Assembly: GCF_040938485.1 (NCBI RefSeq)
Contig: NW_027270966.1
Location: 806,001-870,000 of the forward strand
DNA length: 64,000 bases
From: Diadema antillarum
Taxonomy: Eukaryota
Reading direction: 5' to 3'
The notes beneath the pieces were generated by a model. It did not search any database. It was not told where the DNA came from and saw only the letters and a list, made by a program, of their open reading frames with translations. Each line of letters starts with the position of its first letter. Within the stretch, counting starts at the first letter, position 1. Below are positions 7,114-64,000 of the stretch, piece by piece. The translations under genes were made by a program, and so were the position numbers.

Positions 7114-7228
7114 ATGGAAATTATTTGTTTAGTAGCCCGTGTCGTTGTCTTTCTTGGTGTTTTTCTCCCGCTTTCGTCTTCACAACTCCATGCGATGCTG
7201 AGGAGGGAACAAAGACCGCGATCCAAAT
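7114..7228 (+). CDS. Exon 1 (coding): signal peptide MEIICLVARVVVFLGVFLPLSSS-QLHAMLRREQRPRSK
   Basis: cacgATGG start context, hydrophobic core then small residues, donor AAAT|GTAAGA at 7229 (phase 1). Linkage to exon 2 across the 16-kb intron is inferred from phase and domain logic; extra exons cannot be excluded. Confidence 0.7.
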
Positions 7229-10200
7229 GTAAGACATATTCCTTTTTGCAGTTTTCATCACTCGAGTTGTTTGTGTGGCTGGGTTGTCTCAGTGCTGAAA
7301 ACGATATCATGAAAAAGAGGTTTATTGGGATAATACGATGTTATTTAAACTCGTGACACTTTCCTTCTTGTGGCATTGAAGGTTCAAAGATGAGATAACA
7401 ATAAAGATTCATCTTACCATGTGCCTACCCAATTGCATGATTCTGGTTTATAGCCTGCATTGTTATTAAGTACGCCCTATGCTGACTATTTTCGATAAGA
7501 ATATTATTTCATTTATTGTATACTCCACCTGCTTCGAGCAAAGTAACAATGCATCATTGATTGATCTCTTATCAGTGAAGTAGGAGGTAGTCCGTTGGTA
7601 ATAAGTGCATTATTAGTTATGATGAATCTGCACAGCTAAATAATGTATCAAATTTGTAAATAAGATGTAGAGAAAAGAAGACACAAACAAAACAACACAC
7701 ACACGAAAGCAGCCGAACATGCCCTGCCGGAGAGACCACAGTATCCCACACTCAGTGTGAAACACAATGTGAACACAGTGTGAAATTTCTTCATATTGTT
7801 AAATTCGAGCGTTTAACAATGTGAATCATCAAAGCACGGTGTGAAACAGAACAATGATGCGTGAATACTCTGTGAAAAGTCACATCGCAACGTGAAACAC
7901 TTTCACACTGTGGCTGAATTCGAGCGTTTTCAAATAGCAGACTATGTGGACACACTTTGTACACACTGAGGGACGTAGTACTTCTTCCAGCAGGGTGAAG
8001 GGCTTATAGGAATGGCGAAGGGCTCATGGGAATGACGAGATCCCTTTTTATATTTTTCTTTATTCGTCGTAAGCTCTCCTTGAGTTTGTGTCACATTCTG
8101 CGTATGAGAAAAGTTTGTGGAGCAAGTACTTTAAAAGTGTACAGTGTACTGGAAAACTGACTTAGACCTTGTCTTTGTAAGAGTGCAAAGACGCTCGTCT
8201 GCATACCGTATGCCATGCACTCCGCAACACTCTGCTACATCATGATGCTTCACGTTATGAGTGTAACTAAAGATCTATGCACTTTTATGAGGTTGAATAC
8301 ATAGAAGTCTTCGGTCGTTAATGAACCCATGAAATGATCTTGAATAGCTTGCTCTGAAGGCACCTACACAGTTGATGGAGAGGTCTCGTCGCTAGGTGGC
8401 GACAGAACCTTTCACTATGTTTTCTAACATCCTCTCGTGGTTATCTACTCCTTCTTCAACATCAGCTTTATACGCCTCTGGCTATTAGTCGTAACGCGAT
8501 AGCAGCATTCGCACGAACATCTAAATGAAATGCTTCCGCGTCGGCCTTTAAAATGACGAAGGGGAACGATGTGTAGGTGGGCACGTTCGATAAAGAGGAG
8601 TTCCTTAACCCGCATTGCCCTGAACCACATGAGCCCAGCAGACGGCATTGACCGTGATCTGTCGCTCAGGTAGATTACGTTAACGTGATTTGAAGAAAGT
8701 GGGGCCTTGGTAGTGTGAATGACATGTGGGGGCACACGCGGGGCATCCTATAACCAAGCAGTCGCAAGACAGCTGTGATCTCTAGCATTGCTTTAGCGTT
8801 GTATACGCCGTCACTCCAGACAAAACTTAACTTAAATCGCATATCATATTTCAACAGATTTTGCGACACCTGTCATAAAACAATGCTCCATAATTGTGAG
8901 TTGAAATTTGCCTTGTTATACCAAAAGTACTGATAGAAAATAAACATTGGGAACCATTGGTCTAAAAAACCCCACAAAACTAAAGCAACAAACAAACACG
9001 TAAATGAAAAGCGAATATTAAGTAAAACCCCGAGCGAAAATCTGCATATGAAACAATAAACAATACGAAAATACTGATACTAAGAGTGTAAAAGTTGAAA
9101 CTTAAAATGAACGACGATGACTATCACTAAATGACATCATAGGCCGTCAATTGTATTGATAGATATTAAAATGACTTTTGTCGTTTATATTATACTGTAA
9201 CATTAATCCTATCTGGGGATCCTATATTCACTCACGGAATGTTCAATCCATTACAAGCAAGATGTTGGACCCCGGGCTCTCGGAAAAGCCAAACAGGTTA
9301 TAGCTTTTAGTACACGCGGAATGCTTTTTTTTATTAGTATAATCACTCAAAGTAGTGATAAGAGCCATGATGACTGTATAGGTCTATTCGGTTTTAAAGT
9401 ACTGTAACTCATGTCTGCCATAACGGGAGGGAGAGGGAACATTGCCATATCATGTCGCTTTGATCGCCTAATTAGACACAACGTAGAAAGGAAGTCCCAT
9501 AAATCAATTAAAGAAGGAAGATTCAGGATATCGATTCGAAAAAAACAACCAACAACCATGTTTTAGTGATATCCCTCTTACAAGGCCTTTATTACCGGCC
9601 TTATGCTAATGATCGAAGTCGGATCTTCAACCAGAGAAGATTCCATCAGTATGTATCCTACGAAATGCTTGTTGCCTCGAAAGATATGGTGATGTTAGGT
9701 AGGACAGTTTGTCGTGATGTTTACACCACTTTGCGACAAGTAATTAATGCGGAAATAAGTTGATAATCATAATTTCTATAATGATATTCAGATACCCTGT
9801 AAAAAAAAAGAGAGAAATAAACACACGTGTCTACTGTTTGAAATTACGTGGTTATGTGCACTTAAGCATTTCGGCACACTGATAATTGGCAGGGTTTTCG
9901 ATGCTTGTTAATGAACTAACCCTCTGTGTGTGTGCTTTGAGTGCTGATTGACACAGAAAACCCTACACTGTTGTACACACAGTTCAAAAGACCTTTGAAC
10001 AGAAAGTGTAAAAAAAAGTTAATAAATTTCCTGCACGATTTTGTTATGTCTATAGATTTTTCTGCACGGCTGACAGATTTCGTCATGCAATCATCAAATA
10101 CTTATCATTGTCTTCGGTAGATGGTGACATGGGCTGTTGTTTACAGTGTACAGTGAAAACGAAAAGCATCGCCATGCATTTTATGTTTTTCCTGAAATTT

Positions 10201-13200
10201 AGCGCCAGATATCAAACAAGGCGTTCACTATCTTATAATAGTAGACCCTCCAGCACCTTCTCTCGGTTTAAAAGTCGTCCCAGTATCTGGCTGGCGCACG
10301 TGCACTTCAATTCATATGGGGAAGACAAGCAGGATTGGACTCGATGCTATCTGCTGAAAAAGTTACGCAGAATCCGGTCACACTCCCCATGTTACTGACG
10401 GAGTTGATCCAAGAATTCCACCCATTACCCGAAAGAGGAAGGAGGCGTCTCCATAGAATTCTCTCGTACAGCCTCTGTCTGCTTAGTGCTTGTAGTATCA
10501 GTAATGCGCTGTGGTGGCCCAGTGGATGACCAAAGACCATAACTCACGAGGTTCGGCGTTCGAGTCCCTTGCATGGCTGCAGCCTGTTGAACCAGTGTTC
10601 CAGGTATTTATATGCTCATAACCTATATAGTTCGTAAGTCCAGTTATTGGACGCTTGCAAGCATTTACAGGTATATATCCTCCCAGCTGCCACGAAGAAA
10701 ACCCCAAACCAACAACATAACCAAATTACAGCGCACAAACAAGCAGATTAGAAGGCAATATACCTAATCTGGTCGGGAATTATGAAATCTTTGCAGGACA
10801 AGGGCTTACAAATGCGTAATTATACCATTTTGAACAGAATAATATTATGAACTTTATTGTCTGTTTCTTGTTCGATCAAGCCCGTGTCATGTCCTTTTGT
10901 TTTCTGTGGGATATTTGGGGTCAATGGGAAAAATTCTAACAACGTCATGGTTTATCAATAGATGGGTCACGGAAACCCACAATTTGTTAATATTTTTTAA
11001 GTATTCTAACAGTAAGTGATAATGTGGTAAAACTTAAATCAACAGTTGCTTTTCCTTTTAACATATCAGTCCTTTCACTTTTCAGCTCCCCCCCCCCCCA
11101 CGGCCATATTTGCCCGATATTTTGGCCGCAATGTTTGCGGATTTAACAGTGAAGGATAGTGACCGGTCGGCAGCTGCGATATTACTGACCAGCTGTCTAG
11201 CCGCAGTGTAGCGATTCCATTTGCCAGATTTGGTTTGCGTGCAACTGGAATGGCTGACCTTCCTTTGCCAGCTCATTAAACTTTACGAGAAAATGCTGTG
11301 TGACTCTTGCTGAACTTTGACTTGCACTGTTCACTGTTTAAAATGAAATTTGGATATTGGTTATTGTGTGAAGAATCTAAACAAATTCATCCATTGATGA
11401 GGCATTACCATACGATGACCATCCAAAGAGTCTGAAGAAAATGCCGAATGGAATATACCCAGGACCGCTACTTTGAACAAGAACAATAATAGCTTGTTTA
11501 TAAACTAAAAACATCTTCATCCTTCAACAATCTTACTTTCTAAACCGTAATGTCACGAGTGCAATCCCGTTTATCTTTTCGTGGTATAATTGAAAATGGC
11601 AAGCGGACTTCCAAATCATTTTTACGTAGTCCCTAAACTACCTGTTTAAATTTGTTTGTTTACCCTCACAACCCATTTCACTTGAAGGCAAGCTCGTGCT
11701 TTAAGGGTTATAGGAACCCATAAACGTCTCCCGAGCGCATGGGAAGCGTACGTGATATCCTGAAAGAGGAACACTAGATGAACTTCCAAAAAAGTGCTGC
11801 AGTAATATAACTACTTACGTGTAGCGGCTAGCAGCCGACTGGTTTCCATAGTTACACCCTGATGTTATCTATTTTTCAAACCAGTTAGTTTCCCCCAAGT
11901 GCATACAACTGAACTGTTTACGGAAGACCAACTAGTGCCCCAGAATATAGGCTATGCATCCAAATTCTCAGATGGAAAAAATGAAACAAGCAAACACATT
12001 TAACAAACCCTTAAAGGTGTAACTGTGCACCTTTCTGGTCTGAAAGGTGCAAAGTTATTCAAGAGCATAGACACTCAAAAGTCGAAAAGTTTACTCAGAA
12101 TTTATACACAGATGACCACGTGTTTTCAATATTTCCCAGGTCCCTCAGTACTTCGGCCCTTTCTATTATGAAAGATAAACAAACAAACCGTTTTAGTATC
12201 GCATATTGAATTTACATGCTTGTCTTATATTCTCTTACTACGTGTGCTTGGCCAAAATAATGGTAGTAGAGAATTAAAAAAAAAATAAAATGGTGTATGA
12301 GAGAGTAACAACTCATGCACGTAAAAGATTCCGCTTCATTCATTCATCGTAAAGAGCAGGGTGTTTAACCCGGTGAAGTGGTCCCACCTCAAATCCAACT
12401 GGACCCCATGGAAGACCAGCTTAACGTAGCTGAATATGGGCTATCCAACCATCTTCTCAGATCTCAGATGGAAAATGAACAAACAAACAAACAAACAAAC
12501 AAACAAACAAACAAACAAACAAACAAACAGCCACCTCATCCATATGCGATATTTTTCATGTCCTTGAAAGAAAAGATGTTGGAGAATAAACCCTCCTGTA
12601 TTATTTCTCTGTCACTCTCCCATGGCCACACCCTTGAAGTCCGATAATCAATTAAAGAGCGGATGTCAACATCTTCCCTCCTCGCTTATCACGATTAAAT
12701 GTGCGCAATAATCACATGAGCAAACTGCCGCGTCGTCAACTGCACCTCGACCTGTAAAGGGATTTTCCACTATGCATTTAATGCGAATTTATTACGGACA
12801 ACATAATCAAACAGGCAGTGATTAAAATTAGAGAAATTCACTCAAATACCCTCTTGGTACGCTTATCATGTATCCGTTGCAAATTCATCATATTTCCCGA
12901 AACAGTTATTTTGGTCGCAGTCAACGTCCAAACGCAGGTGATGATGTCATGAAGTCCCAACCATCCCAGCTTGCTTTTACATGGGGTATCCTACAATCTC
13001 CTCCCTTGCCAATCATGTTGCAAATGAAATCATATTTTCTTTGCAAAGCCAGGATTGATAGGTTATTGCAACTTTAAAGGAATCCGACGTTAAAGCAGTA
13101 ATTTCATTTTTAATTTGATGTTACCAAATAAAGAGAAAACATTGAGGGAGTATTTTTTTCAGCTTGGATTAGCATGCACAAAGGATACATGACGTCATCA

Positions 13201-16200
13201 TGTTATCTAATCTGCATAACGTCAACGTACCAAATGCCACTATTTTGGGGGAAAATATTGGAAAGTGGTCAGTTCCATTATTTTTATTTTTGTCAGATTG
13301 GAATAAAGTGAACATTATTTCGTTTGTTAGGGATTGCTTTGATTATCAAAACTCACCAAAAAGTAATCTTGAACATTATCAAAATTTTCACTGGAACACT
13401 TTTCTCTGGTCCTCAAGGATCAACAGTGGGTTGTGTCGAGATTTACGTTACTCTACTTGATCATTCCGATTTGTGTTTAAAGGGATGGTACAGTATTGGT
13501 GGGGATGAGAATTGGGCTTTTAACTTTTTGCGAGATACCAAGAAAGCACTTATGATGTACAATATGTGTATAGTACAGAGCATACCATTTTAAGAGGAAT
13601 TCAAAGTCTATTTGATGAAAATCGGGTTTGGAATGACTGAAACATCAAAAAACAAAGGAAAACAAAGCAATCGTAATAAAGTGTGGGTCCCACACTTTAT
13701 TAGAATCACTCTTTTTTTTGGATATTTCAGCCATTTCAAAACCAATTTTCATCAAATAAACGTTGAATTCCTCATAGAATTACATGCTCTTTCATATTTC
13801 ATAAGAAGTTTCTTATTATTTCAACAAAAAATGTTAGAAACCTGAATATGGGTCTCAACCAAAACTGTACGATCCCTCAAATGGAATGGACATTCTTTTG
13901 CTCTAGGTAGAGTGAGCAAATAGTAATCCAATGTATAAGTACGTCCTGTGTTCACGAAAAGAGAATAGATTCACGCGACAGTTGGTTGAGATCATGCTCC
14001 ATGATTAACAATTGGGGATACAAACAAGTAAACAGAAACAGAACAACAATAACCAAGAAGCAGAAACTGATCGAGTGACGTACGCAGACGTCTGCTATTC
14101 GATGATATTATTTACAGAAGAAAAACAAAATATTGGAATGCTGCTAGCGTGTTTCCTTTTTTCCTTCTATCCGTACGAAGAAAATAAAATAAACCGCATT
14201 TTTTCTTTTTGTTGCTGTTATTGTTTGTGTCTTGTTCTATGTCGTTGCTGTCTTCGTTTGTTTGTGCTTTGTTTTGGGTTTATTTCCCCTCCTACTCCCA
14301 CCTTAAGGAAAAGGCCCGAGGTATTGTCTGACGACCTTTCATTGGCTGTTCTGCTTTCGCTCGAGGACACTTCCTTTGCCGCAAATTATTGTTGCAATGC
14401 CGTTTTCCTTTCTCATGTTTGTGCACATTGTGCGAAACTTGTATAACATATTCTTCCCTCTCTACATCACCCCTCTCTAAAGTGTGTACATTCATGCAGT
14501 AACCTCACATAGTGCCTTGCCCAAGGAAGAGGAAACACTTAATATAATCAAGACGATTAGAAATTTGATTACTATGCATCCGAACATACATGGAAGGGGC
14601 CCGTTACAGTGAAATGAAACTGCATACGTAGCAAGGTATGGGTATACGGCTATTTGATACGTCTGAATGCACTGATTGAGAATTGATGGCTTTTCAGAGG
14701 ATATCATTTCCTTTCTTTGCTGTATGTTGGGTTTGTTTTCAACGACACCTTAGATATTTTGTTGACCACATTTTACTCTCGTAGCTATTCTGAAGTCAAT
14801 AGCTGTGATGAATGTCGGGCTCACAGTATGAAGTGTACTCAGGGCAACAAATGTGTGTCTTCTCTTGGGGTGCTGTTCGTTATTCCGAAGGTTCGATATT
14901 CCGAAGGTTCGTTATTCCGAAGGTTCGTCAATCCGAAACACACAAATTCCCTATACCAAGAGGTTCGTTAATCCGAAAATGAAAAAGGGTTCGTTAATCC
15001 GAACATTTGTGGCGTTTTTCCGAACATTCCTTATTCCGAAGATTTGTTCATCCGAAAATGAAATTCGGAAACACGAACCTTCGGAATAACGAATCTTCGG
15101 ACTGAAGAGCCTTCGGAATAACGAGCTGTAACCCTTCTCTTGTGACCAAATACTTTTATAAATACGTTCATTTCATTAAATCTATTTTGTATATTTCAAG
15201 AAAAACTCATACAGAAATCACATTACAAATACCAAAATAACGAATGATATGAATTAGGTGAAACATTCACCCCAATATATATGACTATCTGGAAATGAAA
15301 GAAAACGCAGCGGTCTGTCGCAGTTGTATTAGTAACTCTATTCTTGGAAAGCATAAGTAATGTGATGAGGCGCATACATAAGTTTGCAAGAGTCATGGGT
15401 CCAAACATCAAGCATACATCTGATGTCTACTAAATACAGAAGTGGACAGAGAGCCAAACGAAAGATCGGGCCGTCGGTTCTGACAGATCAACCACGCAGA
15501 AAATCAACAGTATTAGCTGATGGGTTTTTGTTATAAAACACATTGATTGTAGTCATTTTTTTTTTAAATTTTTATTCGGAATGGAATGCAGTGCAAGCAG
15601 TTTGCTTGCGACACAATGTGATAAAGACTATGTCATTTGCCGAGAAAACTGAGACACAACTCCATAAATACCCCCCCCCCAAAAAAAAAAGAAGAAGAAA
15701 AGAAGCAAAATGTTTTCAGTTTATGAAACTGTTAGACGGCTGTGCTGTGTCTATTATGTCGAACAAGATTTCCCAAGCACGTCTTGACATTTTCATTTTT
15801 TCAGGAAGCTTTTCAATTCCCCATTCCTTTGTTGAAAGACGGGGAAGTGGAATGCATTTGTCCTCAAAATTTATTTATTTATTTATTCATTTTAACTTTG
15901 GAAAAAAAAACAATAACAACAACAGTACGGAAATGGTAAATATTCAATCAGGAAAATACCGACGTGATTGTTGCAGAGGAAACGGTTCCGCAATCTAATT
16001 TTTCCTTCGCAGCCGATCTTTAACAACATGTACACCGTTAAGGCGGTAGAATGTCAAAATTGCATTTTAGATTTGATTCGGGTCAGAAACGTCACAATGT
16101 CGAGTCTGATTCACGCAAACTGGCGGAAGATGAGATCAGGAAATGTCTCGGAGAAGAATTCCTCGCCCCTCCAGGCATGGGTTCGGCTTTGGAAACTCCC

Positions 16201-19200: not shown

Positions 19201-22200
19201 TTGAACGTTTGGAACGACGAATTACAACATTTGCGCTTATTTCGATGATATGTTTGAACTATATCACATGATATCTGGCGGCGACATATTAGCATAGGAG
19301 AGCCTTCACTAATAAATCAGCGCTGATTTCCTTCAGAATACGAATTATATCTGTATTGTATTGATAAACGATTTTAAAACTCATGTACAGGTGGTGGTGC
19401 TATACGTCAGAGACTTTGCCCTTCATTCTCATAATTAATTCATCATTATGTCTTGTACCCTTTACGTTCATTCACGTTCGAGGGAAATGTATGAACTAAA
19501 TGTACATCCACTGCCAAATAGGTTCATGCCTTCAGTGTGTCTGTTGTTTGAATAATGTCCAACACGACGTGTTTGTAAAACTTCAAAATTATATAGTTTT
19601 TCACACAGAGGTCGTTAGCCTACAATAAAGTTTACGTAAGTCTACTGTTATGTGGTATCTATTTATATAAACACTAAACAAAAAGTAAGTTCCCCCTATT
19701 AACCCCTGTAATTAATGAATCGGGAACCTCTAAGGAAATATGAATACAGGATCATGTAGCTGTATTTCGCGGCTACCTTTCATGTGAAATTCAGTGGATA
19801 TCACTAAGTCACGCTTGAGTGAGCATGACTTAAAGTCAAAATGCTCACTCTTTGAAGTTCACAAGCCCAATTTTGCAACTTTGATTTGATGATATCGGAA
19901 TAAATTTCAATTTTCCGGGATAAAAAGGCATGCAACGTATAATTTATGTGCTTCTTATCGTACCATGTGATTTGTGCACAAAATTTCACGGTTGAGTGAA
20001 CACAGGGTGAAAATTACCAAAATGGCCGATTTGACATGTTTCTCGTGGTAATTTATATCCATTCAGATTGAATTCGTGTGTTGAACAGTTTTTACACACA
20101 ATTCACGTAATTTCACGGTTGAATGAGCACATGAAAAACAAAGAAAAATAACAATTCAAATTGTGCAGTAAGAATTGGGATAATTTTGCGCACTGAAATC
20201 AATTGTTTTAATGCTTTTTGTATTGTGTTTAATACCACTGTGCATACAGTGATCACCTGACATTTCAGTCACGCTTCAATGAGCATGTGGGGCTGGAAAA
20301 CCCTTTTTTACCTTATATAATAAAAATAGTCATTGTTTTTTATGTTTTAATTGAAATGTTGGGAAATTACTCTGATTTCAATTATAAAAATAACATTTCG
20401 ATAAAAAATGACGTTGTGAAATGCTTCAGTGAGCACATAAGATAAGCAAAGTGTGCAGGTCAAAACCATTTTCGTGGCTGAAATTCCCATAAGATTTACA
20501 TTTGGTTGGTTTTGAAGATGTGTTCAGCGGTGTTAGTGGATAGAGCCTAAAAAGTGAGTACAGATGCTCCCCAGTCTGTGTTATATTGCCATAACGATCG
20601 CATAATAGTCAACCAACATCTTAAGCAACTATCATCACCATCACAATCATCAACACCACATGAACAACAAAGGCCACTACTCTCCATGCATATTATGTGC
20701 AGCACGGGAGGATATTGATGTTGAACAAAAGTGAAATTTGGTACCATGTCAATGATTAATTGCATTTATTTTCCCTTTGAGTTAATGCATGACTTCATGA
20801 CGTTACAAAGATCAAGAACTTAATGCCAAAATTAGTATTTAGTAGCGAGAACAAAGGCCCGAAGATTTAATTTGCATAATTTCTCATCTCTGCTCCAAAA
20901 AGGGGATTTCATTAAACTAAAGGCAGACCAATTTCCCCACGAACACTTCAATATTTAATCAAAGGTAGCCATGGATTATAAGGAGGGTTTCGGGCACCAT
21001 GTACCCTTTGACGTGTAAAATTTTGAAGGAATGGCAAGGATCACTGAGACATTTATATTGGTCCTAAACGCAATAATGAAATGTTTTTCAGTTGATTTTA
21101 AATGGAGAAGATCAATGCAACACCTGCTGGATGATTTTAATTAGATAAATCATTGTTTCATAATATGGTCATTCAACCGTAAAATAAACCACATTGCATG
21201 CAAAAGCCATTGTTAGCTTTCAAAAGCATAAATTCCTCCTCTTCACATGAACTTACCATGGGGATTATGGCCAAACTGCCAATTTTTCATTATGTAGGTT
21301 AAAAAAAGGTTTTCCAGCCTCACGTGCTTATTGAAGCGTGACTGAAAGGTCAGGTGGTCACTGATATGCGTTTGGGTATTAGCACAATATAAAAAAAAAG
21401 CATCATACAGTTGATTTCAGTGCGCAAAATTATCCCAATTCTGACTGCACAATTTAAATTGTTATTTTTCTTTGTTTTTAATGTGCTCATTCAACCATGA
21501 AATTACGTAAATTGAGTGTAAATACTGTTCAACACACAAATTCAGTCTCAATTGATAGAAATTACCACGAGAAACATGTCAAATCGGCCATTTTGATAAT
21601 TTTCACCCCGTGTTCACTCAACCGTGAAATTTTGTGCACAAGTCACATGGTACGATAAGAAGCACATAAATAATACGTTGCATGTCTTTTTATCCTGGAA
21701 AATTGAAATTTGTTCCGATATCACCAAATCAAAGTTGCAAAATTGGGCTTGTGAACTTCAAAAAGTGAGCATTTTGACCTCAAGTCATGCTCACTCAAGC
21801 GTGACCAAGTAATATCCACTGAATTTCACATGGGTAGCCGAGAAATACAGCTACATGATCCTGTATTCAGATTTCCTCAAAGGTTCCGGATTCATAAAAT
21901 ATAGATGTTTGTTTTAGGGGGAACTTTCTTTTTGTTTAGTGTTTAGATAGATGCAAACTTACTGTGACCAATTCAATGATCCATAATGTCACAACACAGA
22001 CCCTTATTACAGTCTGGAGCATCAACAAGTGACAACAACATGTATGGAATCCTGGAAACTCTTGCCACATCTGGCAGTTTCAAAGACATAAGAAGAATTA
22101 GTTCGAGTTAGTTATACCTAGATGCAAATTTGAAAGGCAGCACAGCATTTAGGTATGTAGAATAGATAGCCATAGGACAACACTGATTTTGACTTACATT

Positions 22201-25200
22201 TCACATTAACTTGTTTTTGTCGGAATTATTGTATCGCATTATTTTACTGATAGAGATGTATACCACTGCATATTTTGTCCATTTATTATACATGGCGTTG
22301 GTAGCACACTCTTCATACGATACATTAGGAGTTCGTGCAACATGTTTTAATGCCCTCGTGGAGTTCATTGCACTCTCAAACGTTAACTGGCAAGCACTGA
22401 TACATTTAACCCATCTGTATCTGACCAGGGACAAATGGATTCTGTCCCGTAAAGTCCTTGTCCCCACTTCTGGCCGGACCGCTAAGCTCTACCTGTAACA
22501 ATCACTGCGCGTGGAGATTCGTTAATTGATAAGTACGATGAAATGATCAGACAAATACTTCCGCTATTCTCCCTTCGACCTTAATGAAGATGAGTCGCTA
22601 ATTGATCTGTCCTCTGCTGGTGTATGCAGAAAGGGGTGGGGGTGGGAGGGTGGGCGGCATGCAGAGCTGAGATGAAGCTGCCAAGTTTTGGAGAGGTGAG
22701 GTCGCGCCTATGTAAGCAGAATGATCCAAGGGGCGGTATGGGGGCTGTCATCATCCCTCAGGGATATGTTCCATATAAACTAATCTGTGTTGTTCTAGTT
22801 GTAATATTTTAAATCTCCACCTACGTTGTCATTATAGACATATGCGTCACTCGGTCTACGTGGGCATCGCTCACCTTGCATAATAATACACCCTTAAAGC
22901 AAAAATGATGGTAACAAGGATAAAAAAAAATGATGACAATGGAACTACACTGAAACAGGGGTGGATATTAACATGTACTTTTTTTTTCTCAGTGTGCTGA
23001 AACTTCTTCCAAGCATTAATTCGATTCGAGCTTCATCTTTCTATGCTTTCACCTGTAATAAACATATCATATTATACTATCAATTCCTTCGTGCATATAA
23101 AGCATAACGAATTTGTATATCTGTAATATATATAAGTACATATTATTTATATGCATAAAATATATACATAATACACTAATATGTACTGATGTATTACAGA
23201 TATGCAAATGCTCTATTCACGAATGATATATTGGTAGTATCATATGATATGTTATTACCTATTTTTTATGATTATATAATTTTATATATGCACACATGCG
23301 GATACATGGGTATATTAACTCTGTGCTCGCGTATGTGTATATCGGTTTGTCTTCTCTCCTAAGTATGATCCCCACAATGATCACCATCTTTAGCTCTGCA
23401 ACAACCCCTTTCTTGCTTTCCATTCATCGATACACAGGGCGACAGTACTGCACGTTTAACAACGCCCTGCAGTGCCATCCGACCATCGTGGCACAATCGC
23501 CATCGGGGGTCGACCAGCAGGGATGGAAAATATACAGAGCTCCAAAGAGCAAAGGTAAGACCTCTTCATCATCCGGTTCCTTTAACCCATTTAAGGATCA
23601 GCACCTAAAAACTCTCATTGACATTTTATGCAGCATGGTTTTCAGTGATTGTGAAAGGTTAGAATCTTTTCCGCTATAAAATTCTTCTTTCTCAGATCAG
23701 TTCGAATGACAAGATTTTTCTGTATTTTTCGTTAATATTTATACTTTTACCTGTGTTGCTTTTTTCTTAAGAATCCAAAAGATGCCAAAGGATTTGATGA
23801 GTAGAAAGTGATATTGAATATTCTACAATATGGATCATTATACGTCGATTGATTGTTTTTTTTTTTGTTATGGGACCATTTTATTCATTATGATAAACGA
23901 ACATTTATTCGGAATCAAAAGTGGTTGTTGTCACATTGCTTACAGAGGTTTTGGCAATCGCAAATGAAAGGAAATCAAGATAAGAATCAACTGGGTATTG
24001 TGTCGCTAAGTGGACTTGTTTTGGTTGTTATTGGTGATGTTTTAGAATGGATGCAGCATGATGAGAAGTAATCGTCGAAGTGGCTGGAACCAAATTATCC
24101 ATTTTCCTTATCGCCCCTATAAGGCGTCTATGCAAGATAACCTAGGAACTTTGACAAATTTTACAAATATTGATGGCGTGCTGCGTTTCCTGTGCAGAGT
24201 GTCCAAGTTCTTTGTCGTGTCAGGTCGCTGCTCATTTTCCTGGGTGCGAGGTTGTATAATCTGAGATTACGGAAGCAGGAAAGCGCCTCGAGGGGTCAAA
24301 AGAATGTGTTGGCGCACGTTCTCCTCTCTTCAGTCTAGTCAAACACAATCAGGGATGAGACGGGATGTCACCGGATGGTTTCAATTGAGACGAACTAGAA
24401 ATGACTTTCTCTATTATCTGTGGGTGGGATGAAGCTATGACTCAATGTCTTCATCGTGGTCTTTTTTTCTATCTTGTTACTTTCTCTTATATGTTTCATG
24501 TGTGAGAGGATTATCTTACATTTTCCGCCGTGAATTATATTCTGTATGTCCCACACGGCCGTCGTCAGCTCAACTACATGTGACATTTTCTCGTGGAACA
24601 AAGTGATTAAATCCACTCAAACTGACAAAACGTGTATATCTGATAGCCGCGACTGCAGTACAACTTCATCAACTCTTCTAAAGCTTGTACAGGTGGCCGT
24701 GCTAGGCGGGCATCAACGATAAGTCTGTCCTAATTGGGGGGAAGGAGAATAATTGTCGGAGTGGGACCAAAATTGATTCGAGATACACACATCCCAAGGG
24801 TGATTACAGGGCTGGCCGCTAGCTGCAGTGCCCTGGAATAGATTAGAACTTTGCGGCGACATGTGCATACACCTGCACTTTGTAACCCTTTGTTTCCCAT
24901 CGAATTATTATCTACTCTCTCATTGTAATTTGTTACAGTAAAAACAAAGCAACGATGTCTTTTCCCATCAAAAAGATACTCTCATTTTGAATTCCATTAT
25001 ACTTGAGCGTAACGCGTTTGATGTTGACTCAGTTTACGTACATTAAGTAAGCTCTTGAATGGGTTTCATCTTTTATCATTATTATCCAGTACGAAAGGAA
25101 GGAACTCTTAGGATGGTCTCGAGCTGACAAACATACTAGATAATCGGCAACGCAATTACAAAGACGTATCATATAGCAATTACATTGACGTAGCCATGAA

Positions 25201-27289
25201 AACATTTAAGGTTTTACTATATNNNNNNNNNNNNNNNNNNNNNNNNNNNNNNNNNNNNNNNNNNNNNNNNNNNNNNNNNNNNNNNNNNNNNNNNNNNNNN
25301 NNNNNNNNNNNNNNNNNNNNNNNNNNNNNNNNNNNNNNNNNNNNNNNNNNNNNNNNNNNNNNNNNNNNNNNNNNNNNNNNNNNNNNNNNNGGCACCCCGA
25401 ATGAACTAGATAATTGATATTCAATGGTCTCGCTCACTGAAAGAGATAGTTGTTATATATCCCATTGAAATTCGAACCAGATTACTACGCCGGGATCACG
25501 TGCACGTATCGATGCTGGCAGAGCATCCGGATATTTGCCAACATGCACGCCTCCAGCCGAGTGGCGACTCTCTCTTTTTACTATTACATCTGGGAGACCA
25601 AGACGAAATCGAACGACGGTCTGCTACCAGAGATACGTATCAGAGGTAATCATGAAAACGATTTACACCCAAGACCAGAATTTCTGTTTGTTTGTTTGTT
25701 TGTTTGTTTGTTTGTTGTTTGTTTGTTTTCAAGCTACTACGCTAAAATGATAATGACACGTGGATAACAATGTACTGGTATATCATAATTCGTCGATGCT
25801 GTTGTCGTAAATGAAGTAGATTATGACAGTGATGGTAACAAATTCGACCATAACCATTCAATCTAAAGGGATGGTACAGTATTGGTGGAGATGAGAACTG
25901 GGCTTTTAACTTTTTGCGAGATACCAAGAAAACACTTATGATATAGTACAGAGCATACCATTTTAAGAGGAATTCAAAGTTTATTTGATGAAAATGGGGT
26001 TTCGAATGACTGAAACATCCAAAAACAAAGTAAAACAAAGTGATTGCAATAAAGTGTGGGTCCCACACTTTATTAGAATCACTCCTTTTTGGATATCTCA
26101 ACCATTTCAAAACCAATTTTCATCAAATAAACGTTGAATTCCTCATAGAATTACATGCTCTTTCATATTTCATAAGAGGTTTCTCATTATCTCACCAAAA
26201 AATGTTAGAAACCTGAAATTATGTCTCAACCAAAACTATACGATTTAAAAAAAAAATCTTTATCTTCATCTTTACTGCTTGCAAACTTGCTCTTGTTTGT
26301 GTTATTCTAAGAGCGTCATACGAAAAAAAAAAGATCGTTGTGACTTATCTTCACTCCAATTCGTAGCAAGATAGGCCTAATCATGTTCATTGGGTGTTTA
26401 TCTTTCCGTCTGCTTTCTACGGTAGATCGTGAAGTCGTGAATTTAATCTTCTGGAACAGTAATTTGGGATCATCATGTAGAATTCATCGTATGGAAAACT
26501 GAAGGAAGGGAAAACTAAGATTATTAAAGATAGTTGTTGAATTAATGGGGGGGGGGGGGTATAGAGAAGCGTTGTTTGCAGGTATTCCATCACGTGCTTT
26601 AAATATTTAGAGTCAATAATGTATACCCTTCCATTATATGCGGGAATTTCAGTGATTTTGGGAGGATATCGCATAGCATTGATTGTTCGGACTTTGAACT
26701 TGCTGTAAAATACGTATTCACCGTTGTTTGATGTTATTTTCATCCCCAATTTTAATGATCCTTGGTCATCTATTAAGGCTGCCAAAACAAGGAGCTATGG
26801 AGATCGACAAACCAGCCCATGTCTGAGGAAAACGGAGAGTGGGTAGGCGTGGTTCTACCAATCCAGTGTGCCGATACGTTTAGTGTGAGTATCTTTATGT
26901 CCATAGATCATACATGGTGGCCGTGCGTAAGGTTAAATGCCGTGGTTTTGGGAATGCATTACAGACGATGTATATTTGCCAACACGTTATCATTCATGTG
27001 TGTTTGTTCAGCGAACAGAAACGTTGGAAACCAGTGAAGACTGTTTAATCTATTTATTTATTTATTTGGATGCGGTATAGAAAGTCGCACGGAAAGACGA
27101 ATTACATTGGAAAAACATTACGCACGATGTGAGAGGTATATCCTCCTTAAAGAATCATTCTTTAAGGCGTCAAGATCACTCGCGTTCTGTTGACAGTTTT
27201 CGACTGTAGATAAAGAATGTTGTCATGAAACATTCCTCCATGTTGACACATGCGTATACATCCAAAACCATTAAAATCGTTACCAGTCG

Positions 27290-27342
<53 letters not shown>

Positions 27343-39300: not shown

Positions 39301-42300
39301 CATCACCACGTCTGGTACTAGGACACTCGACCAGCATACCCAAGTTGCTTGTCGCCCTGGCTCTTTGCATCTGCACTCTGACAATTTGCATCCACTGCGT
39401 CATCTACAAACGGCAAAAGTAAGTAATCAAACACTGAGTGAAGAGAATAGCGATGACGATAATGATGATGATAATGATGATGATACCATACTATTTTTTA
39501 AATAAACTAGTGATCATAGTCATGTTCCCTGTGTCTGTTGAAATATTTAATGACCTCAACCCGTTGAGGACGAGTCCCGAGTATACTCGGGCAGGTGTCT
39601 ATGAGAAATGCGTGTTGTAGCAAAATCAAACCGTCCTCAACGGGTTAAGATTAAATACATTGATTTCAATGAAAGATGTTAACATCAGTACAATGTAAAA
39701 ATTCGGAAACAGAGCAAACAAAACGTCTCAATTAAAATAACCTGAGTGGGGATGTCTGTTAACAAGTTAAAGGCAAATTAATATTTTGTCTGTATCACCC
39801 GAATTATCATTATGTGTGCTCAGAGATATGAGGTCATATGTGACCGTGCACCTCAAAACGAACATAAAGTCGCACACACTGATTTTGCGTGAGGACTGAA
39901 AATAAGTGAAATGGGTCAACCTAGCCGAACTTGACTTTTTTTTATTTTCTGAAAGAGCGGGTCTTCTTTTACATTATGCTAAAATTTGGTATCATAAAAC
40001 GGGCAGGAAAGTGTGTTTTTTAGAAGTTTATATCGAGCATTTTTCGTAGAATAGTGTGATTAGGTGTTTCTTTAGAATCCCTTTTTCATTTCTGAAAACC
40101 TTGTCCACACTCTTCACTTTCAACTCTAATAACTTTTGAAAGGATAGTGCTACTGCTTGAAAGTTGGCATTAATTATGGACAGAATGTGTTAATGAGGCA
40201 TGCTAAATTTCAGTTTAATCTGATAATCCCTTCATTGTTGTCACTCTGGTGGTTTACTTCCTGTTTTTTGTCCCATTCATCGCACAGCCAGCACGGTTTG
40301 GTAAAAATTAAGCGCTTGAATAGACACTGTACTTCAGAGCCTCTTTTCTCAGTTCACACTTTTCCTGAGTTTGTGCTTTCTTTCCAATATTTAGATAGGT
40401 TAGGAGAGTCCACTTGATTTGAGTTATACATCATTTTAAAGCTTAAAGTCTGCTCTTTCAGAATATGGTCTTAACTAAAAATTCATGTCTGGCGACTTTT
40501 TGTTTGTTTTGAGGTGCAGTGTCACATATAGGACCTTTGAACCTTACTGGTCTGTCAGGCTGTCATTTAGCGTGATACTCTCAGAAACAAAAGTATACCA
40601 TTAGTTCTTCTCCTATGCTGTTCAGTCGTTGACCAGAAAGACCATTTTTTTGTCATGTTAATGGTTTAAACTCTCGTTCACCGCTTCGTTACATCGATTT
40701 CTTTTACGAGATTTCATACGATTCTGTCTTTACATAAATATCTTGGCGGCGCGCTGATAATCTTTAATCTAGGTGAGTATCATTCTTTTCATAACTGTTG
40801 GCTGCCGGAACCGACATCAGTGTGTTTCGTCAATGTGATTGTTTTCATTCGTTTTTCTTGTCTTTTACGTTTGCTCAGGAAATGTCGGAAACTGACTCAC
40901 GGAAGTCCGGCCCCCGAGCGAAACGCTGTCACCGGTCAACTCTCGTCATGCTCCTCGGTGTGTGAGATCGTCATCACCGACCACAGCCGTAACTCGTGGG
41001 CTGTCAACAGGAGCGAGCCCTTCAACGAGCCGGGCACGTCGCGAGGCCTGACGGTCGATCACGGTCCAGGAGCTCATCGACCTCGGTTGTCGACATGTAC
41101 CCTTGGCATCAAGACCTTCAACGCAGACCTGGGTGGGGCCAACGAGTTACGCCCGTCCGGTCGGGCGTGCAGTCTGCCCAGCAGACCGATGCCAAACATC
41201 TACGAATCCATCGACGAGGTCAAAGATGGTTTGACGTCACACCCGTCTAACTTCTTCCTCAACCTGAAGAAGCGGAGCTCGTTTATGAAGCGCGTTGTCG
41301 ACACGATTGAGATTCCCTTCCGAAAGAGCTTCGTCGAGATGAAAGCCAAGGGCTCGGCTCTGCTGACGAAAGAGCGGAGTGCTTCGGACAGCAAAGTGAA
41401 ACCCGAAACCCCAAAACAGTGGAAGAAGACGTTCAGGAAGTCGAACAGTCAACCCGTCGGAATCCGATACGTTCCAGGTGCACAGACACTGTCGAGGGAT
41501 CTGCACACCCCGTTCACCCACGACTCAAGGAATTTGCCGCCAACTTTCCCTGCCCTGCCGCAGAGGCCGCTGTCCAACGTGTTCACGGCAGCTGCCCGGA
41601 GAGGTAGCCTGCGGATGAGCAAGATGAAATCGCGAAGTCACTCGGACATCAGCGAAGCCGCCTCGGATCACAAGCCGACATCCAGGAGGCAGGTATCACC
41701 GTACTCCTGCTCGAAGCTTCCGAACATCTCCTCACACCTTACCGACTCCAGTCGCAGCGTCCACTTCTCAAAATCGACGGCAGAGACGACCCCGAACCAA
41801 TCATTCACCGACGAGCCCAACGAGACTACTTCGTCGTCTCGCATATCGGAGCATTTCTACCAGGATCTCGATCCGCAATACCAGTCCACGGCATCAAATG
41901 TATATCATGTCCTCGACCCTACCACATTCGAGTCGTCATCATCGTCCTCGTCGTCGTCCTCGTCATCGGAGGATGAAGAGATTGTCCAGAAGAGAACCAC
42001 TATAAAGCGGAACACTATTCTCCAGCGTACCGAGAGTGGTTACACTATTGTTTCAAAGAGCAGCGGCAGCTCGGACTTTGAGAACTCAGTCAGCAGCTCG
42101 ATGTCGCTGATACAACCCGTCGATCGGGTGTATTTTAGACTCGAATCAATCGACCAAACCAGCTGCGAAGATATGGATTATGGATTCGGCGTCCGAGACG
42201 GCTTACTCGAGCACGAATTCGAGATGAGCTGTGACCTGCACAACCACGCGACGGACAAATTCTCGAGGCGCGTTAGTGATTTGGAGACGACGTGCACGTT

Positions 42301-42397
42301 GTCGATGTACGAGGAAAGTGGAAGGATTCTTGACGAAACCGACGTCTCGTCGACAATCGACGACCGACCCGACGTCTTAAAGGGTGTTGTGGCTTAA
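7114..42397 (+). CDS. Spliced 9-exon gene: type I membrane protein, signal peptide-MAM-like domain-mucin-like stalk-TM-long Ser/Tyr-motif cytoplasmic tail (844 aa)
   Basis: Exons 7114-7228, 23438-23554, 25481-25645, 26778-26884, 33774-33858, 35528-35752, 37573-37677, 39322-39418, 40879-42397. All introns are GT..AG with phases 1,1,1,0,1,1,1,2 that match. Total 2535 nt = 845 codons with one terminal TAA. The joined translation gives a coherent domain order. Confidence 0.85.
7722..7995. mobile_element. EnSpm/CACTA-like MITE with CCC termini
   Basis: TIR CCCTGC(C/T)GGA, 2-bp TSD TG/TG, interior rich in GTGTGAAA/TTTCACAC motifs. Confidence 0.7.
10508..10680 (+). mobile_element. tRNA-derived SINE (head)
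   Basis: A box TGGCCCAGTGG at 10515-10525 and B box GTTCGAGTCC at 10558-10567 with tRNA-like spacing; no full cloverleaf; 3' limit approximate. Confidence 0.6.
11925..12528 (+). repeat. Two diverged copies of a short retroposon-like 3' tail ending in (AAAC)n
   Basis: GGAAGACCA..GAATAT(A/G)GGCTAT..TTCTCAGAT..GGAAAA..CAAAC at ~11925-11995 and ~12405-12528; (AAAC)n at 12478-12528. Confidence 0.5.
13481..13877. mobile_element. Foldback MITE, TTAA|AGGGATGGTACAG termini (Kolobok-like), copy 1
   Basis: Imperfect palindrome over most of its length; central perfect 14-bp hairpin 13674-13702; right TTAA degenerate. Confidence 0.75.
14868..15134. mobile_element. MITE with 8-bp TSD and tandem TTATTCCGAAGGTTCG subrepeats
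   Basis: TSD TTCTCTTG at 14860-14867 and 15135-15142; termini GGGT..ACCC; subrepeats switch orientation between the two ends. Confidence 0.8.
19668..21945. mobile_element. 2.3-kb element with ~650-bp inverted arms and ~1-kb spacer
   Basis: About 19668-20330 is the reverse complement of about 21280-21945 (compare the mirrored ORFs 19804-19989 and 21624-21812); outer ends uncertain, no TSD identified. Confidence 0.8.
23438..23554 (+). CDS. Exon 2: MAM-like N-terminus (W)RQYCTFNNALQCHPTIVAQSPSGVDQQGWKIYRAPKSK
   Basis: Acceptor tacacag|, donor AAAG|GTAAGA, 117 nt, phase 1-1; C-x-F..C..W pattern typical of the start of a MAM domain. Confidence 0.85.
25223..25390. other. Assembly gap (N run)
   Basis: 168 N. 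Confidence 1.
25481..25645 (+). CDS. Exon 3: MAM-like core (D)YYAGITCTYRCWQSIRIFANMHASSRVATLSFYYYIWETKTKSNDGLLPEIRIR
   Basis: Acceptor gaaccag|, donor AGAG|GTAATC, 165 nt, phase 1-1; LSFYYY resembles the MAM CLxFWY motif. Confidence 0.8.
25867..26244. mobile_element. Foldback MITE copy 2
   Basis: Colinear with 13481-13877; hairpin at 26048-26074; right end slightly truncated. Confidence 0.75.
26778..26884 (+). CDS. Exon 4: MAM-like (G)CQNKELWRSTNQPMSEENGEWVGVVLPIQCADTFS
   Basis: Acceptor tattaag| directly after an in-frame TAA, donor AGT|GTGAGT, 107 nt, phase 1-0; LW...W..V.L pattern of MAM. Confidence 0.85.
27291..27338. repeat. (TG)n microsatellite
   Basis: Direct reading. Confidence 0.95.
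32255..32440. other. Assembly gap (N run)
   Basis: 186 N. Confidence 1.
33774..33858 (+). CDS. Exon 5: MAM-like C-terminus VIFEGIITSGGQVAAVDNIVLSEGRSNT
   Basis: Acceptor gtctttcag|, donor ACGA|GTAAGT, 85 nt, phase 0-1; matches the MAM (V/I)xFEG...(I/V)A(I/V)DxI end motif. Confidence 0.9.
33933..34080. other. Assembly gap (N run)
   Basis: 148 N. Confidence 1.
34357..35043. mobile_element. Sola1-like family A copy 2
   Basis: GTGACCGTGCACCTCAAAAC...GTTTTGAGGTGCACAGTCAC, TSD ATTT/ATTT; opposite orientation to copies 1 and 4. Confidence 0.88.
35117..35384. mobile_element. Diverged relative of the 7722-7995 MITE, opposite orientation
   Basis: Starts CCCTGCTGGAAGAAG, ends TTCCAGCAAGG, shares AAACGCTCGA and TTTCACA(C/T)TGTG motifs; TSD ambiguous. 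Confidence 0.65.
35528..35752 (+). CDS. Exon 6: Pro/Ser/Thr/Arg-rich mucin-like stalk
   Basis: Pyrimidine tract plus cttaag| acceptor, donor ACCA|GTAAGT, 225 nt, phase 1-1, GC-rich; frame of ORF 35569 (ALPQPSIAVVRPTLPSST...SPTTPRTT). Confidence 0.85.
37023..37094. mobile_element. 72-bp piggyBac-like mini-MITE
   Basis: TTAA|CCCGTTCCATA...TATGGAACGAG|TTAA. Confidence 0.65.
37573..37677 (+). CDS. Exon 7: Thr/Pro-rich stalk (I)TATMDGTALPTELILPTDQTLPTVIAEGATGAGR
   Basis: Acceptor gtttacag|, donor AGAG|GTCAGA, 105 nt, phase 1-1. Confidence 0.8.
38200..38862. mobile_element. Sola1-like family B (related TIR, different interior)
   Basis: TIRs GTGACGTGCTTCAACAAAAGGATCCTAAAGTCG / CGACTTTCGGATCCTTTTGTTATAGCGGGTCAC, TSD ATTT/ATTT. 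Confidence 0.8.
39322..39418 (+). CDS. Exon 8: transmembrane exon (G)HSTSIPKLLVALALCICTLTICIHCVIYKRQ(K)
   Basis: Acceptor gtactag|, donor CAAAA|GTAAGT, 97 nt, phase 1-2; ~21-residue hydrophobic run followed by a basic stop-transfer segment. The frame differs from the listed ORF 39230. Confidence 0.85.
39560..39644. mobile_element. 85-bp piggyBac-like mini-MITE
   Basis: Perfect 13-bp TIR CCCGTTGAGGACG, flanks TCAA/TTAA, internal palindrome CCCGAGTATACTCGGG at 39576-39591. Confidence 0.7.
39840..40525. mobile_element. Sola1-like family A copy 3
   Basis: Same TIRs, TSD ATAT/ATAT; very similar to copy 2 and in the same orientation. Confidence 0.88.
40879..42397 (+). CDS. Exon 9 (terminal): ~505-aa Ser-rich cytoplasmic tail ending ...VLKGVVA
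   Basis: Longest ORF in the window (40820-42397), GC3-rich; acceptor tttgctcag| at 40878 gives phase 2, matching exon 8; poly-Ser run near 41930-41968. Confidence 0.92.
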
Positions 42398-53421: not shown

Positions 53422-53499
53422 CTGTATTAATATATTGGTGGGCGGAAGCAAAAAATTCGAGGGCCCGATGAGAGAGAAACAGAGAAAAAACAACAACAA

Positions 53500-53700
53500 A
53501 AGTCTGTGAAATCGGGGTTTAACTCACACATGGGACCTCCATTTAATCAGGGAGGTGGGAAGTCCCACCTCCCTGATTTAATGTTGTATCTGAGGGACAG
53601 AATGCTTATACACAACATTGCTCAGTAAGACTCGGAAATCTCAAACGCGGGTCCCTGGGATAAGAGGCAGACGCGCCGTGCCGACTGAATCAAATCACCT
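53500..53700 (-). mobile_element. Degenerate tRNA-derived SINE
   Basis: A-box-like TGATTCAGTCGG (53681-53692, minus strand), degenerate B box near 53634-53648, SINE-like body downstream. Confidence 0.4.
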
Positions 53701-63647: not shown

Positions 63648-64000
63648 TCACTTCACGTCGCACGCGGATGTTCGCCACAGCCACTGCACATTGGTGTAGG
63701 ATCCCAGCGTTTCTTCTGATCTCCTACGACTACTGCGATCTTGTCCAGGGGCTTCCTTAAGCACGCCATTTGGCGCTTGTCGCTCCCCGTGAAACGTGTT
63801 GCGGTACCCCCCGGTCCTCCTTCTAAGACCCGTTTGGATCCATGGTGCTCTCTTCTTCGACAATTCTTCGCTGACCCTGTCTGAACACGGTAAACTTGTT
63901 CGAAAGTTGAGCTGCCGATCGCTGCTGTTGGTTGGCACACTGTGGAAGCAGCCATGAAGGGGCCCCTGCCGCGGCTTATCATGTGGATAATACCTTGGAT
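63648..64000 (-). CDS. GC-rich coding-like segment truncated by the window edge; two frames open
   Basis: Two minus-strand frames run open from position 64000 to stops at ~63648 and ~63653; no recognisable domain; frame undecidable. Confidence 0.3.
   Translation of the reverse strand, partial: PRYYPHDKPRQGPLHGCFHSVPTNSSDRQLNFRTSLPCSDRVSEELSKKRAPWIQTGLRRRTGGYRNTFHGERQAPNGVLKEAPGQDRSSRRRSEETLGSYTNVQWLWRTSACDVK

Follow-up and report, generated by a model that had tools for sequence, protein, structure and literature searches.

A nine-exon gene of the sea urchin Diadema antillarum predicted to encode a membrane protein with a single MAM-like domain and a long, conserved, non-catalytic tail

Background

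Nearly all MAM domains known so far serve as accessory modules in multidomain proteins, including the type IIB RPTPs (PTPRM/K/T/U), neuropilins, MDGA proteins, meprins, ALK/LTK and MALRD1/MAMDC4, and those of RPTPmu and the meprins mediate homophilic binding or oligomerisation. The class C scavenger receptors of insects (SR-C) are non-enzymatic recognition and endocytosis receptors with the architecture CCP-MAM-somatomedin B-Ser/Thr-rich-transmembrane (TM), and in Spodoptera the MAM domain of SR-C binds ligand and mediates endocytosis (PMC6191154). Here we describe a gene from a 64,000-nucleotide window of the genome of Diadema antillarum (RefSeq assembly GCF_040938485.1, contig NW_027270966.1, positions 806,001 to 870,000 of the forward strand; all coordinates below are those of the window). 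The gene lies on the plus strand at 7114-42397, and in its predicted product a stripped-down MAM-like domain is the sole folded part, followed by a stalk rich in Pro, Ser and Thr, a TM helix, and a cytoplasmic tail of some 500 residues that is predicted to be disordered and whose degree of conservation is comparable to that of many enzymes.

The window protein shares the extracellular MAM-type jelly roll with the above families, but the Ig, FN3, PTP, CUB, FA58C, astacin, LDLa and kinase domains and the glycosylphosphatidylinositol signal found among them are not present here, and a VWD domain was likewise not found by Pfam in the proteins of the new family. Indeed, Pfam returned no domain of any kind in the four family relatives scanned, including the orthologues from Strongylocentrotus purpuratus and Lytechinus pictus. 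Because it is without every accessory module of those families, the protein is a member of no characterised MAM family, as had been proposed in a first-pass annotation of the window made by a model from the sequence alone. However, the list of MAM membrane proteins that this annotation offered omitted the closest characterised analogue, the insect SR-C (PMC6191154). The likeness to SR-C (Drosophila SR-CI and Spodoptera SR-C) lies in type I topology, one MAM domain, a Ser/Thr-rich stalk and a TM segment (PMC6191154), whereas the CCP and somatomedin B domains belong to SR-C and are absent here (Pfam on orthologues). Sequence-level orthology to SR-C was not seen in a search of 1.84 billion proteins. 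To our knowledge, no SR-C carries a long tyrosine-motif tail.

Structure of the gene and its predicted product

Rebuilt from stop-to-stop frames and flanking DNA, the gene model yields an 844-aa protein plus stop codon from nine exons at 7114-42397 (+), with all eight introns beginning in GT and ending in AG and with compatible phases. This reproduces exactly the nine phase-compatible exons of the first-pass annotation, and the order of parts that it had read from them (signal peptide, MAM-like domain, Pro/Ser/Thr stalk, TM helix, long tail) is recovered by hydropathy, composition and alignments. The exons, the three assembly gaps that lie between them and the parts of the predicted protein are as follows.

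7114..7228, plus strand: exon 1, comprising the start codon, an N-terminus that resembles a signal peptide (MEIICLVARVVVFLGVFLPLSSS), a short basic linker and a phase-1 end at AAAT/GTAAGA
23438..23554, plus strand: exon 2, start of the MAM-like domain (CTFNNALQC ... GWKIYRAPKSK)
25223-25390: N gap in intron 2, ending 91 nt before the exon 3 acceptor
25481..25645, plus strand: exon 3, middle of the MAM-like domain (DYYAGITCTYRCW ... ATLSFYYYIWE ... IRIRG)
26778..26884, plus strand: exon 4, MAM-like domain (CQNKELWRS ... GEWVGVVLPIQCADTFS), within the part that matches a profile of canonical MAM domains (residues 90-189)
32255-32439: N gap deep in intron 4
33774..33858, plus strand: exon 5, end of the MAM-like domain (VIFEGIITSGGQVAAVDNIVLSEGR)
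33933-34080: N gap in intron 5, beginning 75 nt past the exon 5 donor
35528..35752, plus strand: exon 6, first part of the Pro/Ser/Thr-rich stalk
37573..37677, plus strand: exon 7, second part of the stalk; GT-AG, phase 1, poorly conserved in sequence
39322..39418, plus strand: exon 8, TM helix PKLLVALALCICTLTICIHCVIY at 39339-39407, then the start of the basic stop-transfer KRQK
40879..42397, plus strand: exon 9, the entire 506-aa cytoplasmic tail and the stop codon in a single open reading frame (ORF)
Residues 1-24: hydrophobic N-terminus (Kyte-Doolittle 3.0 over 12 aa)
Residues ~40-193: cysteine-bearing beta domain
Residues 194-311: stalk (~115 aa), 47% Pro+Ser+Thr
Residues 313-335: TM helix (hydropathy 2.66), followed by basic KRQKKCRK
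Residues 339-844: cytoplasmic tail of 506 aa (exon 9)

Every exon, exon 1 among them, has its counterpart in the S. purpuratus protein XP_030838636.1 (LOC105438996, 817 aa), whose gene shares the nine-exon layout, and by tblastn exons 2-9 follow one another in the same order in L. pictus XP_063968659.1 (785 aa). Identity is 79% to both species in exon 2 and 73% to other urchins in exon 8. Identity to S. purpuratus reaches 69.5% in the MAM-like domain, 73.5% in the TM segment and juxtamembrane region and 63.7% in the tail, and is only 33% in the stalk, which is composed of 18% Thr, 16% Pro and 13% Ser (residues 194-312) and in which a sequence scan found no N-glycosylation sequons. The TM helix is modelled with a predicted local distance difference test score (pLDDT) of 87-96 in the orthologue's AlphaFold model.

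The three N gaps within the gene are all intronic and none touches coding sequence or splice sites. They are not expected to hide coding sequence, because at junctions 2/3, 4/5 and 5/6 the S. purpuratus and L. pictus proteins have no additional residues. Sequence comparisons were confined to N-free stretches. Over the whole window there are four runs of N, the G+C content is 39%, and the ratio of observed to expected CpG is 0.92.

Within the model, support is weakest for exon 1, which lies 16 kb upstream of exon 2. A scan for an ATG followed by a hydrophobic stretch and a phase-1 donor returned one candidate in 23 kb, compared with 0.37 expected in shuffled sequence, so that exon 1 is by itself not above chance and draws its support from the S. 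purpuratus orthologue. The first exon of XP_030838636.1 is equivalent, with a signal peptide, an EQRxRxKW end and the same AAAT/GT phase-1 donor, and the alignment of the two (which takes in three to four exon-2 residues) scores 54, against -11 ± 9 for 500 shuffles. No homologue of the window's exon 1 was found when the 10 kb preceding the L. pictus gene were searched. The two L. pictus RefSeq models (XP_063968659.1 and XP_054772171.1) have short, differing first exons without a signal peptide, unlike S. purpuratus and the window, and the L. pictus Gnomon model opens with a 7-codon exon that likewise holds none; the 5' ends of the L. pictus models are thus probably mis-annotated.

A word search with the gene's own tail returned no D. 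antillarum protein, though the protein of the neighbouring gene from the same assembly is present in the database, and the gene may be unannotated in GCA_040938485.1 or modelled there with a very different length. The exon map given above can serve to correct both the D. antillarum annotation and the L. pictus models that lack a signal peptide. The evidence shows an intact, conserved D. antillarum gene that is predicted to encode a type I membrane protein.

Identity of the ectodomain

By Pfam's own measure (MAM, PF00629, gathering score 26.4 bits) the ectodomain does not belong to the MAM family, because the orthologues and the ORFs over exons 2, 3 and 5 match nothing: the L. pictus orthologue gave no MAM match either whole or as residues 1-170 (E up to 10), the S. 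purpuratus orthologue none at E up to 0.1, and the window's ORF translations spanning exons 2, 3 and 5 none when each was scanned singly. Pfam and folding were here applied to the orthologues, and the joined protein of the window was examined by local scripts (composition, alignment and hidden Markov model (HMM)).

Other comparisons point to a divergent MAM domain. With an HMM trained on 34 canonical MAM domains, drawn from 11 unrelated proteins, the window protein reaches 21.7 bits over residues 90-189, which covers only the C-terminal two thirds of the domain, whereas the best of 2000 shuffled ectodomains reaches 9.6 bits. Aligned with hhalign, the ectodomains of six orthologues match the Pfam-validated MAM domain of the tandem paralogue described below (96.9%, E 1.5e-10, 85 columns). 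In a phmmer search of the PDB the MAM domain of MDGA1 ranks second and is the best match among MAM domains (E 0.053), with the FEG...IA(I/V)DD end aligned, and ESM features place MAM clusters at 0.95.

The first-pass annotation had placed a MAM fold at residues ~40-200, and structure prediction on the S. purpuratus ectodomain bears this out in that its closest neighbours are solved MAM domains. The AlphaFold model is all-beta and of moderate confidence (pLDDT 65, predicted template modelling score 0.66). Its best Foldseek matches are LAST-MAM, enteropeptidase, meprin, the neuropilin-1 MAM domain and RPTPmu, and VIA-align gives Z 14.8 for the meprin MAM domain, the best structural match, and Z 13.2 for those of both RPTPmu and SR-C (PDB 8yt7; root-mean-square deviation 2.8 over 145 residues).

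In sequence, exon 2 aligns with the canonical MAM start CxFExxxxC...W, to which C43-x7-C51 and W67 of the urchin proteins correspond (CTFNNALxC...GW), and exon 5 holds the FEG...(A/I)xDD/N hallmark in common with the MDGA1 MAM domain and the tandem paralogue. Six cysteines lie between residues 43 and 163; the first cysteine pair is missing from the sea-star relatives, and in a multiple alignment the GPxxDHT loop region of canonical MAM domains is deleted throughout the family. The MAM identity put forward in the first-pass annotation thus stands on profile, hhalign, ESM and structural evidence, but only for a degenerate form that Pfam detects in neither urchin orthologue, and we conclude, with good but not complete confidence, that the ectodomain is a degenerate, shortened MAM-type jelly roll, as modelled.

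One further likeness was rejected. A segment at residues ~66-90 (23500-23554 and 25481-25520; GWKIYRAPKSKDYYAGITCTYRCW) resembles a WW domain, with E 0.025 to that of GAS7 when the L. pictus orthologue is compared. We judge the likeness to be due to chance, since these residues lie outside the cell, are divided between two exons and are assigned to beta-sandwich strands in the model.

The cytoplasmic tail

The tail is 17% Ser and contains ten tyrosines. In the window's tail exon the sole Pfam match is sub-threshold (Cwp8_D3, 15.7 bits against a cut-off of 27), the L. pictus tail matched nothing in Pfam, a search of the ESM atlas with the tail gave no usable match, and in the orthologue's AlphaFold model, built on a shallow alignment, the tail has pLDDT <50 throughout. 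The tail is accordingly predicted to be disordered and to have no folded or catalytic domain, and the absence of a kinase or phosphatase noted at first pass is upheld, Pfam finding no meaningful domain. The tail exon is nevertheless 61-63% identical to L. pictus and the S. purpuratus cluster, includes long islands that are identical among urchins, and has a ratio of nonsynonymous to synonymous substitution rates (dN/dS) of 0.08 between S. purpuratus and L. pictus, a pattern which indicates that the tail is strongly constrained, with islands of conserved short motifs. The main tyrosine motifs are these.

41171..41221, plus strand: SLPSRPMPNIYESIDEV (Tyr447), a proline-rich stretch followed by YESI
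41846..41923, plus strand: SEHFYQDLD (Tyr666) and NVYHVLDPT (Tyr681), forming YxxL-x11-YxxL
42032..42061, plus strand: ESGYTIVSKS (Tyr727), which fits the ITIM consensus and is kept in three urchins only

Across three urchins and three sea stars the invariant elements of the tail are a membrane-proximal IHCxI..Q.K, RP..R..SLPxRP..NxYESIDE and YxxL(D/E)P. The second includes the invariant LPxRP..NxYESIDE around Tyr447, whose YESI is close to the pYEEI preference of Src type, and the third, as YxxL[DE]P, surrounds Tyr681, after which a Ser/acidic run follows at 41933-41980 in the window and an acidic Ser/Asp/Glu run in urchins and sea stars alike. SEHFY(xDL) is common to the urchin orthologues and the paralogue (as SEISEHFYYSLFP). 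Further sites conserved in urchins only include SGYT(I/V)V (SGYTIV at residues 725-730), RVYFRL, RRVSDLETTCTLSMYEESGR(L/I)L and the C-terminal DDRPDV. The two motifs conserved over the urchin/sea-star split, as far as their sequences tell, fit SH2 docking and YxxΦ sorting equally well.

The tail invites comparison with receptors carrying an immunoreceptor tyrosine-based activation or inhibition motif (ITAM or ITIM) and with receptors of Draper/MEGF10 type, which are likewise single-pass proteins with no enzyme domain and with conserved YxxL/I motifs. The ITIM consensus is (S/I/V/L)xYxx(I/V/L), which SGYTIV fits, and the YxxL-x11-YxxL pair resembles an ITAM, for which the canonical spacing is 6-8. 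However, the ectodomain here is not of Ig, lectin or EGF type, the spacing of the pair lies outside that of canonical ITAMs, and the tail greatly exceeds theirs in length. The resemblance is an analogy of possible mechanism and does not amount to membership.

Distribution and a tandem paralogue

Searches with the tail retrieved two clusters, namely L. pictus XP_063968659.1 and the cluster of S. purpuratus XP_030838636.1. Both urchin orthologues are annotated as "uncharacterized", and one older L. pictus model as "mucin-2-like". The window protein carries the marks of this orthologue group: collinearity, exon structure, the segment IHCxI(Y/W)xxQ(K/R)K, and LPxRPxxNxYESIDE. An exhaustive phmmer search with a single sequence against 1.84 billion representatives gave only nine matches at E<=1e-3, among them fragments from urchins, proteins of three sea stars, a single protease with several MAM domains, and the paralogue, which is a second protein of urchins; a word search with the L. 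pictus ectodomain retrieved only itself. The sea-star relatives, which are more distant (Acanthaster LOC110980459, Asterias rubens LOC117304851 and an Asterias amurensis protein; 658-694 aa), keep the same order of parts and the same motif.

The tandem paralogue begins at the very end of the window.

63954..64000, plus strand: start codon and first 15 codons of the paralogue (MKGPLPRLIMWIIPW), cut off by the window end

These 15 codons, the only part of the paralogue present in the window, start 21.6 kb after the stop codon of the studied gene and are identical to the N-terminus of a 577-aa D. antillarum protein with a Pfam MAM match (E 3e-18). The same paralogue is represented by S. purpuratus LOC754912, Lytechinus variegatus LOC121431346, L. 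pictus LOC129280143 and the uncharacterized protein of D. antillarum. In S. purpuratus it is the next downstream gene on the same strand, at 14.3 kb, and in L. pictus it is the neighbouring annotated gene on the same contig, at 46 kb (the strand was not compared there). Like the gene studied here, it encodes a signal peptide, one MAM domain, a Pro/Thr stalk, a TM segment and a disordered tail held in a single last exon, with a similar exon layout, and the two share the tail motifs SEHFYxxL and N(x)IYES. It differs in having a canonical MAM domain (Pfam E 3e-21 to 3e-18) and a tail of ~290 aa, ending in NEIYESY. N(x)IYES is, on this comparison, a hallmark of the family. Being itself uncharacterized, the paralogue gives no function.

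Consequently, the window gene is not the orphan that it had been called at first pass, because it is one of a tandem pair and its family is older than the urchin/sea-star split: S. purpuratus and L. pictus each have an orthologue, three sea stars carry relatives, and there is a paralogue with a canonical MAM domain, the tandem sister gene beside which the family arose. The distribution of its members dates the family to before that split, and the window gene takes its place in what is, by all these comparisons, a small unnamed echinoderm family whose members are listed as "uncharacterized". A literature search by the LOC, XP and UniProt identifiers of the orthologues found no paper mentioning them. 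The family appears to be restricted to echinoderms, on one single-sequence search that does not establish its absence from holothurians, ophiuroids, crinoids or hemichordates. Lineage-specific uncharacterized receptors are common in urchin genomes.

A protein of the hemichordate Ptychodera flava, 'MALRD1-like isoform X2', resembles the family in having a signal peptide, MAM domains as its only domains, a stalk, one TM segment and a non-catalytic tail, but differs in its two canonical MAM domains, its ~95-aa tail and the lack of every conserved tail motif, and is related through the MAM domain only. It is named 'MALRD1-like' yet has no LDLa domain. MAM-only membrane proteins are therefore not unique to echinoderms.

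Possible mechanism and alternative explanations

The best explanation of these features, to which we assign a probability of about 0.5, is a MAM-like receptor whose tail acts as a phosphotyrosine docking platform. The MAM domain would bind a protein partner, which could be a second copy of itself, in cis or in trans, after the manner of RPTPmu or meprin, or else a ligand of foreign or matrix origin, after that of insect SR-C, and would be held away from the membrane by the unstructured Pro/Ser/Thr stalk of ~115 aa. The tail, as a non-enzymatic platform, would have its tyrosines phosphorylated by a cytoplasmic kinase, whereupon PxxP-NxYESIDE and YxxL[D/E]P with its acidic/Ser cluster could recruit SH2/SH3 proteins, helped by the adjacent proline-rich element; the urchin-specific SEHFYxDL, SGYT(I/V)V, RVYFRL and MYEES sites may join in this recruitment. 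The same YxxΦ motifs would probably also drive AP-2-dependent internalisation.

A number of points weigh against this explanation. The recruitment of SH2 proteins, as suggested at first pass, is predicted from motifs, and the conserved tyrosines serve equally well as YxxΦ sorting signals. The ITAM-like pair YQDL-x11-YHVL has a spacing of 11-12 residues, over the canonical 6-8, and its first half is absent from sea stars. Pfam's own model leaves the MAM domain undetected in both urchin orthologues scanned, the fold was modelled on the S. purpuratus orthologue with a 12-sequence alignment and not on the window protein, and the Eph ligand-binding domains (Z 12.8) and carbohydrate-binding modules (Z 12-13) fall only modestly below the meprin MAM domain. 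Lastly, the splice junctions were placed by GT-AG ends, phase and orthologues only, and the orthologue gene models are themselves computer predictions.

The main rival, possible but less probable, is that the protein is instead an endocytic receptor of scavenger type, in which the MAM domain captures ligand as in insect SR-C and the YxxΦ, acidic and dileucine-like motifs are AP-2 and sorting signals, with no phosphotyrosine signalling. All of the conserved tyrosines fit YxxΦ (YESI, YHVL, YFRL, YTIV), the acidic Ser/Asp/Glu run after Tyr681 is found in urchins and sea stars, the SR-C MAM domain is among the best structural matches (Z 13.2), and Spodoptera SR-C unites a MAM domain, a Ser/Thr-rich stalk and a TM segment with endocytosis via the MAM domain (PMC6191154). 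However, a 500-aa tail with a dN/dS of 0.08 and many conserved islands beyond its tyrosines is more than a sorting signal needs, the dileucine-like ExxxL(L/I) site EESGR(L/I)L, which reads IL in Diadema, is absent from sea stars, and SR-C has CCP and somatomedin B domains that are not found here. A protein of cell junctions or homophilic adhesion, making MAM contacts as RPTPmu does and using its tail to scaffold cytoskeletal or PDZ/SH3 partners without tyrosine phosphorylation, seems decidedly unlikely: the RPTPmu MAM domain is a good structural match (Z 13.2) and the conserved proline-rich LPxRP could be an SH3 ligand, but RPTPmu adhesion requires the MAM domain plus Ig and FN3 domains that are absent here, a single small domain on a flexible stalk would make a weak adhesive unit, and the proteins end in GVVA or GVRA, with no C-terminal PDZ class I motif.

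Two other explanations concern the gene itself. An incomplete or partly wrong model, with another first exon or with further exons in the long introns or gaps, could be suspected from the chance-level score of exon 1 alone, from the different starts of both L. pictus models, which lack a signal peptide, and from the failure of the word search to return a D. antillarum protein for this gene when that of its neighbour is present. We nonetheless think it very unlikely, given that the S. purpuratus gene opens with a comparable signal-peptide exon whose donor lies at the same place, that domain order is unchanged among three urchins and three sea stars, with no residues added at the junctions, and that the gaps are short (148-185 N) and intronic. 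The missing protein is also the only point in favour of a decaying pseudogene or a chance assembly of ORFs, an extremely improbable reading that we reject on the strength of an 844-codon frame open over nine exons with canonical splice sites, the nine-exon match in S. purpuratus, and purifying selection on the orthologues (dN/dS 0.08), with conservation that reaches the sea stars.

Should the two invariant tyrosine motifs truly serve for docking, as the explanation by a phosphotyrosine docking platform would have it, the family offers a simple system in which to study how non-Ig receptors are linked to SH2 signalling, in an invertebrate deuterostome whose innate immune repertoire is very large. 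A bolder and rather unlikely extension is that the two-gene family represents independently evolved non-catalytic tyrosine-phosphorylated receptors, with the MAM domain, in place of an Ig or lectin domain, as sensor and the PxxP-YESIDE plus YxxL(D/E)P cassette, which is older than the urchin/sea-star split, as a docking unit of Src/Syk type; were it true, the family would form a deuterostome immune or adhesion signalling module without vertebrate counterpart. Structurally the finding is sound, and the family, old and unnamed as it is, has gone unstudied; the signalling is something that we infer from its motifs.

Neighbouring sequence and repeats

A cytochrome P450 gene lies on the minus strand downstream of the paralogue in both Diadema and S. 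purpuratus, and the synteny is therefore conserved. The last 10,047 bases of the window (53954-64000) are 100% identical to JBFRCO010000078.1 of assembly GCA_040938485.1, and a second contig of that assembly, JBFRCO010001279.1, covers the same region (window 53470-64000) at 90-97% identity; it is probably the other haplotype, and the divergence of the two suggests high heterozygosity.

The window also contains several repeats. An interspersed repeat of ~650-700 nt is present in four copies that are 88-96% alike, at 2692-3358 (-), 34353-35049 (+), 39836-40530 (+) and 48656-49286 (-), two of which sit within the gene, one in intron 5 and one in intron 8; the repeat shows no long ORF. Intron 1 holds an inverted repeat of 439 nt, 92% complementary, with arms at 19781-20219 and 21394-21832 that are 1.2 kb apart, and which may be two opposed repeat copies or transposon ends. 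A short dispersed repeat (93%) is shared by intron 1 (13715-13873) and intron 3 (26086-26244), and the ORF-like translations around it, at 13594-13842 and 25967-26213, are also alike. Simple repeats include (TG/CA)n at ~27280-27350 in intron 4 and an (ACAA)n-type repeat at ~12450-12520 in intron 1, and downstream of the gene a CA-rich tract extends over ~61570-62090.

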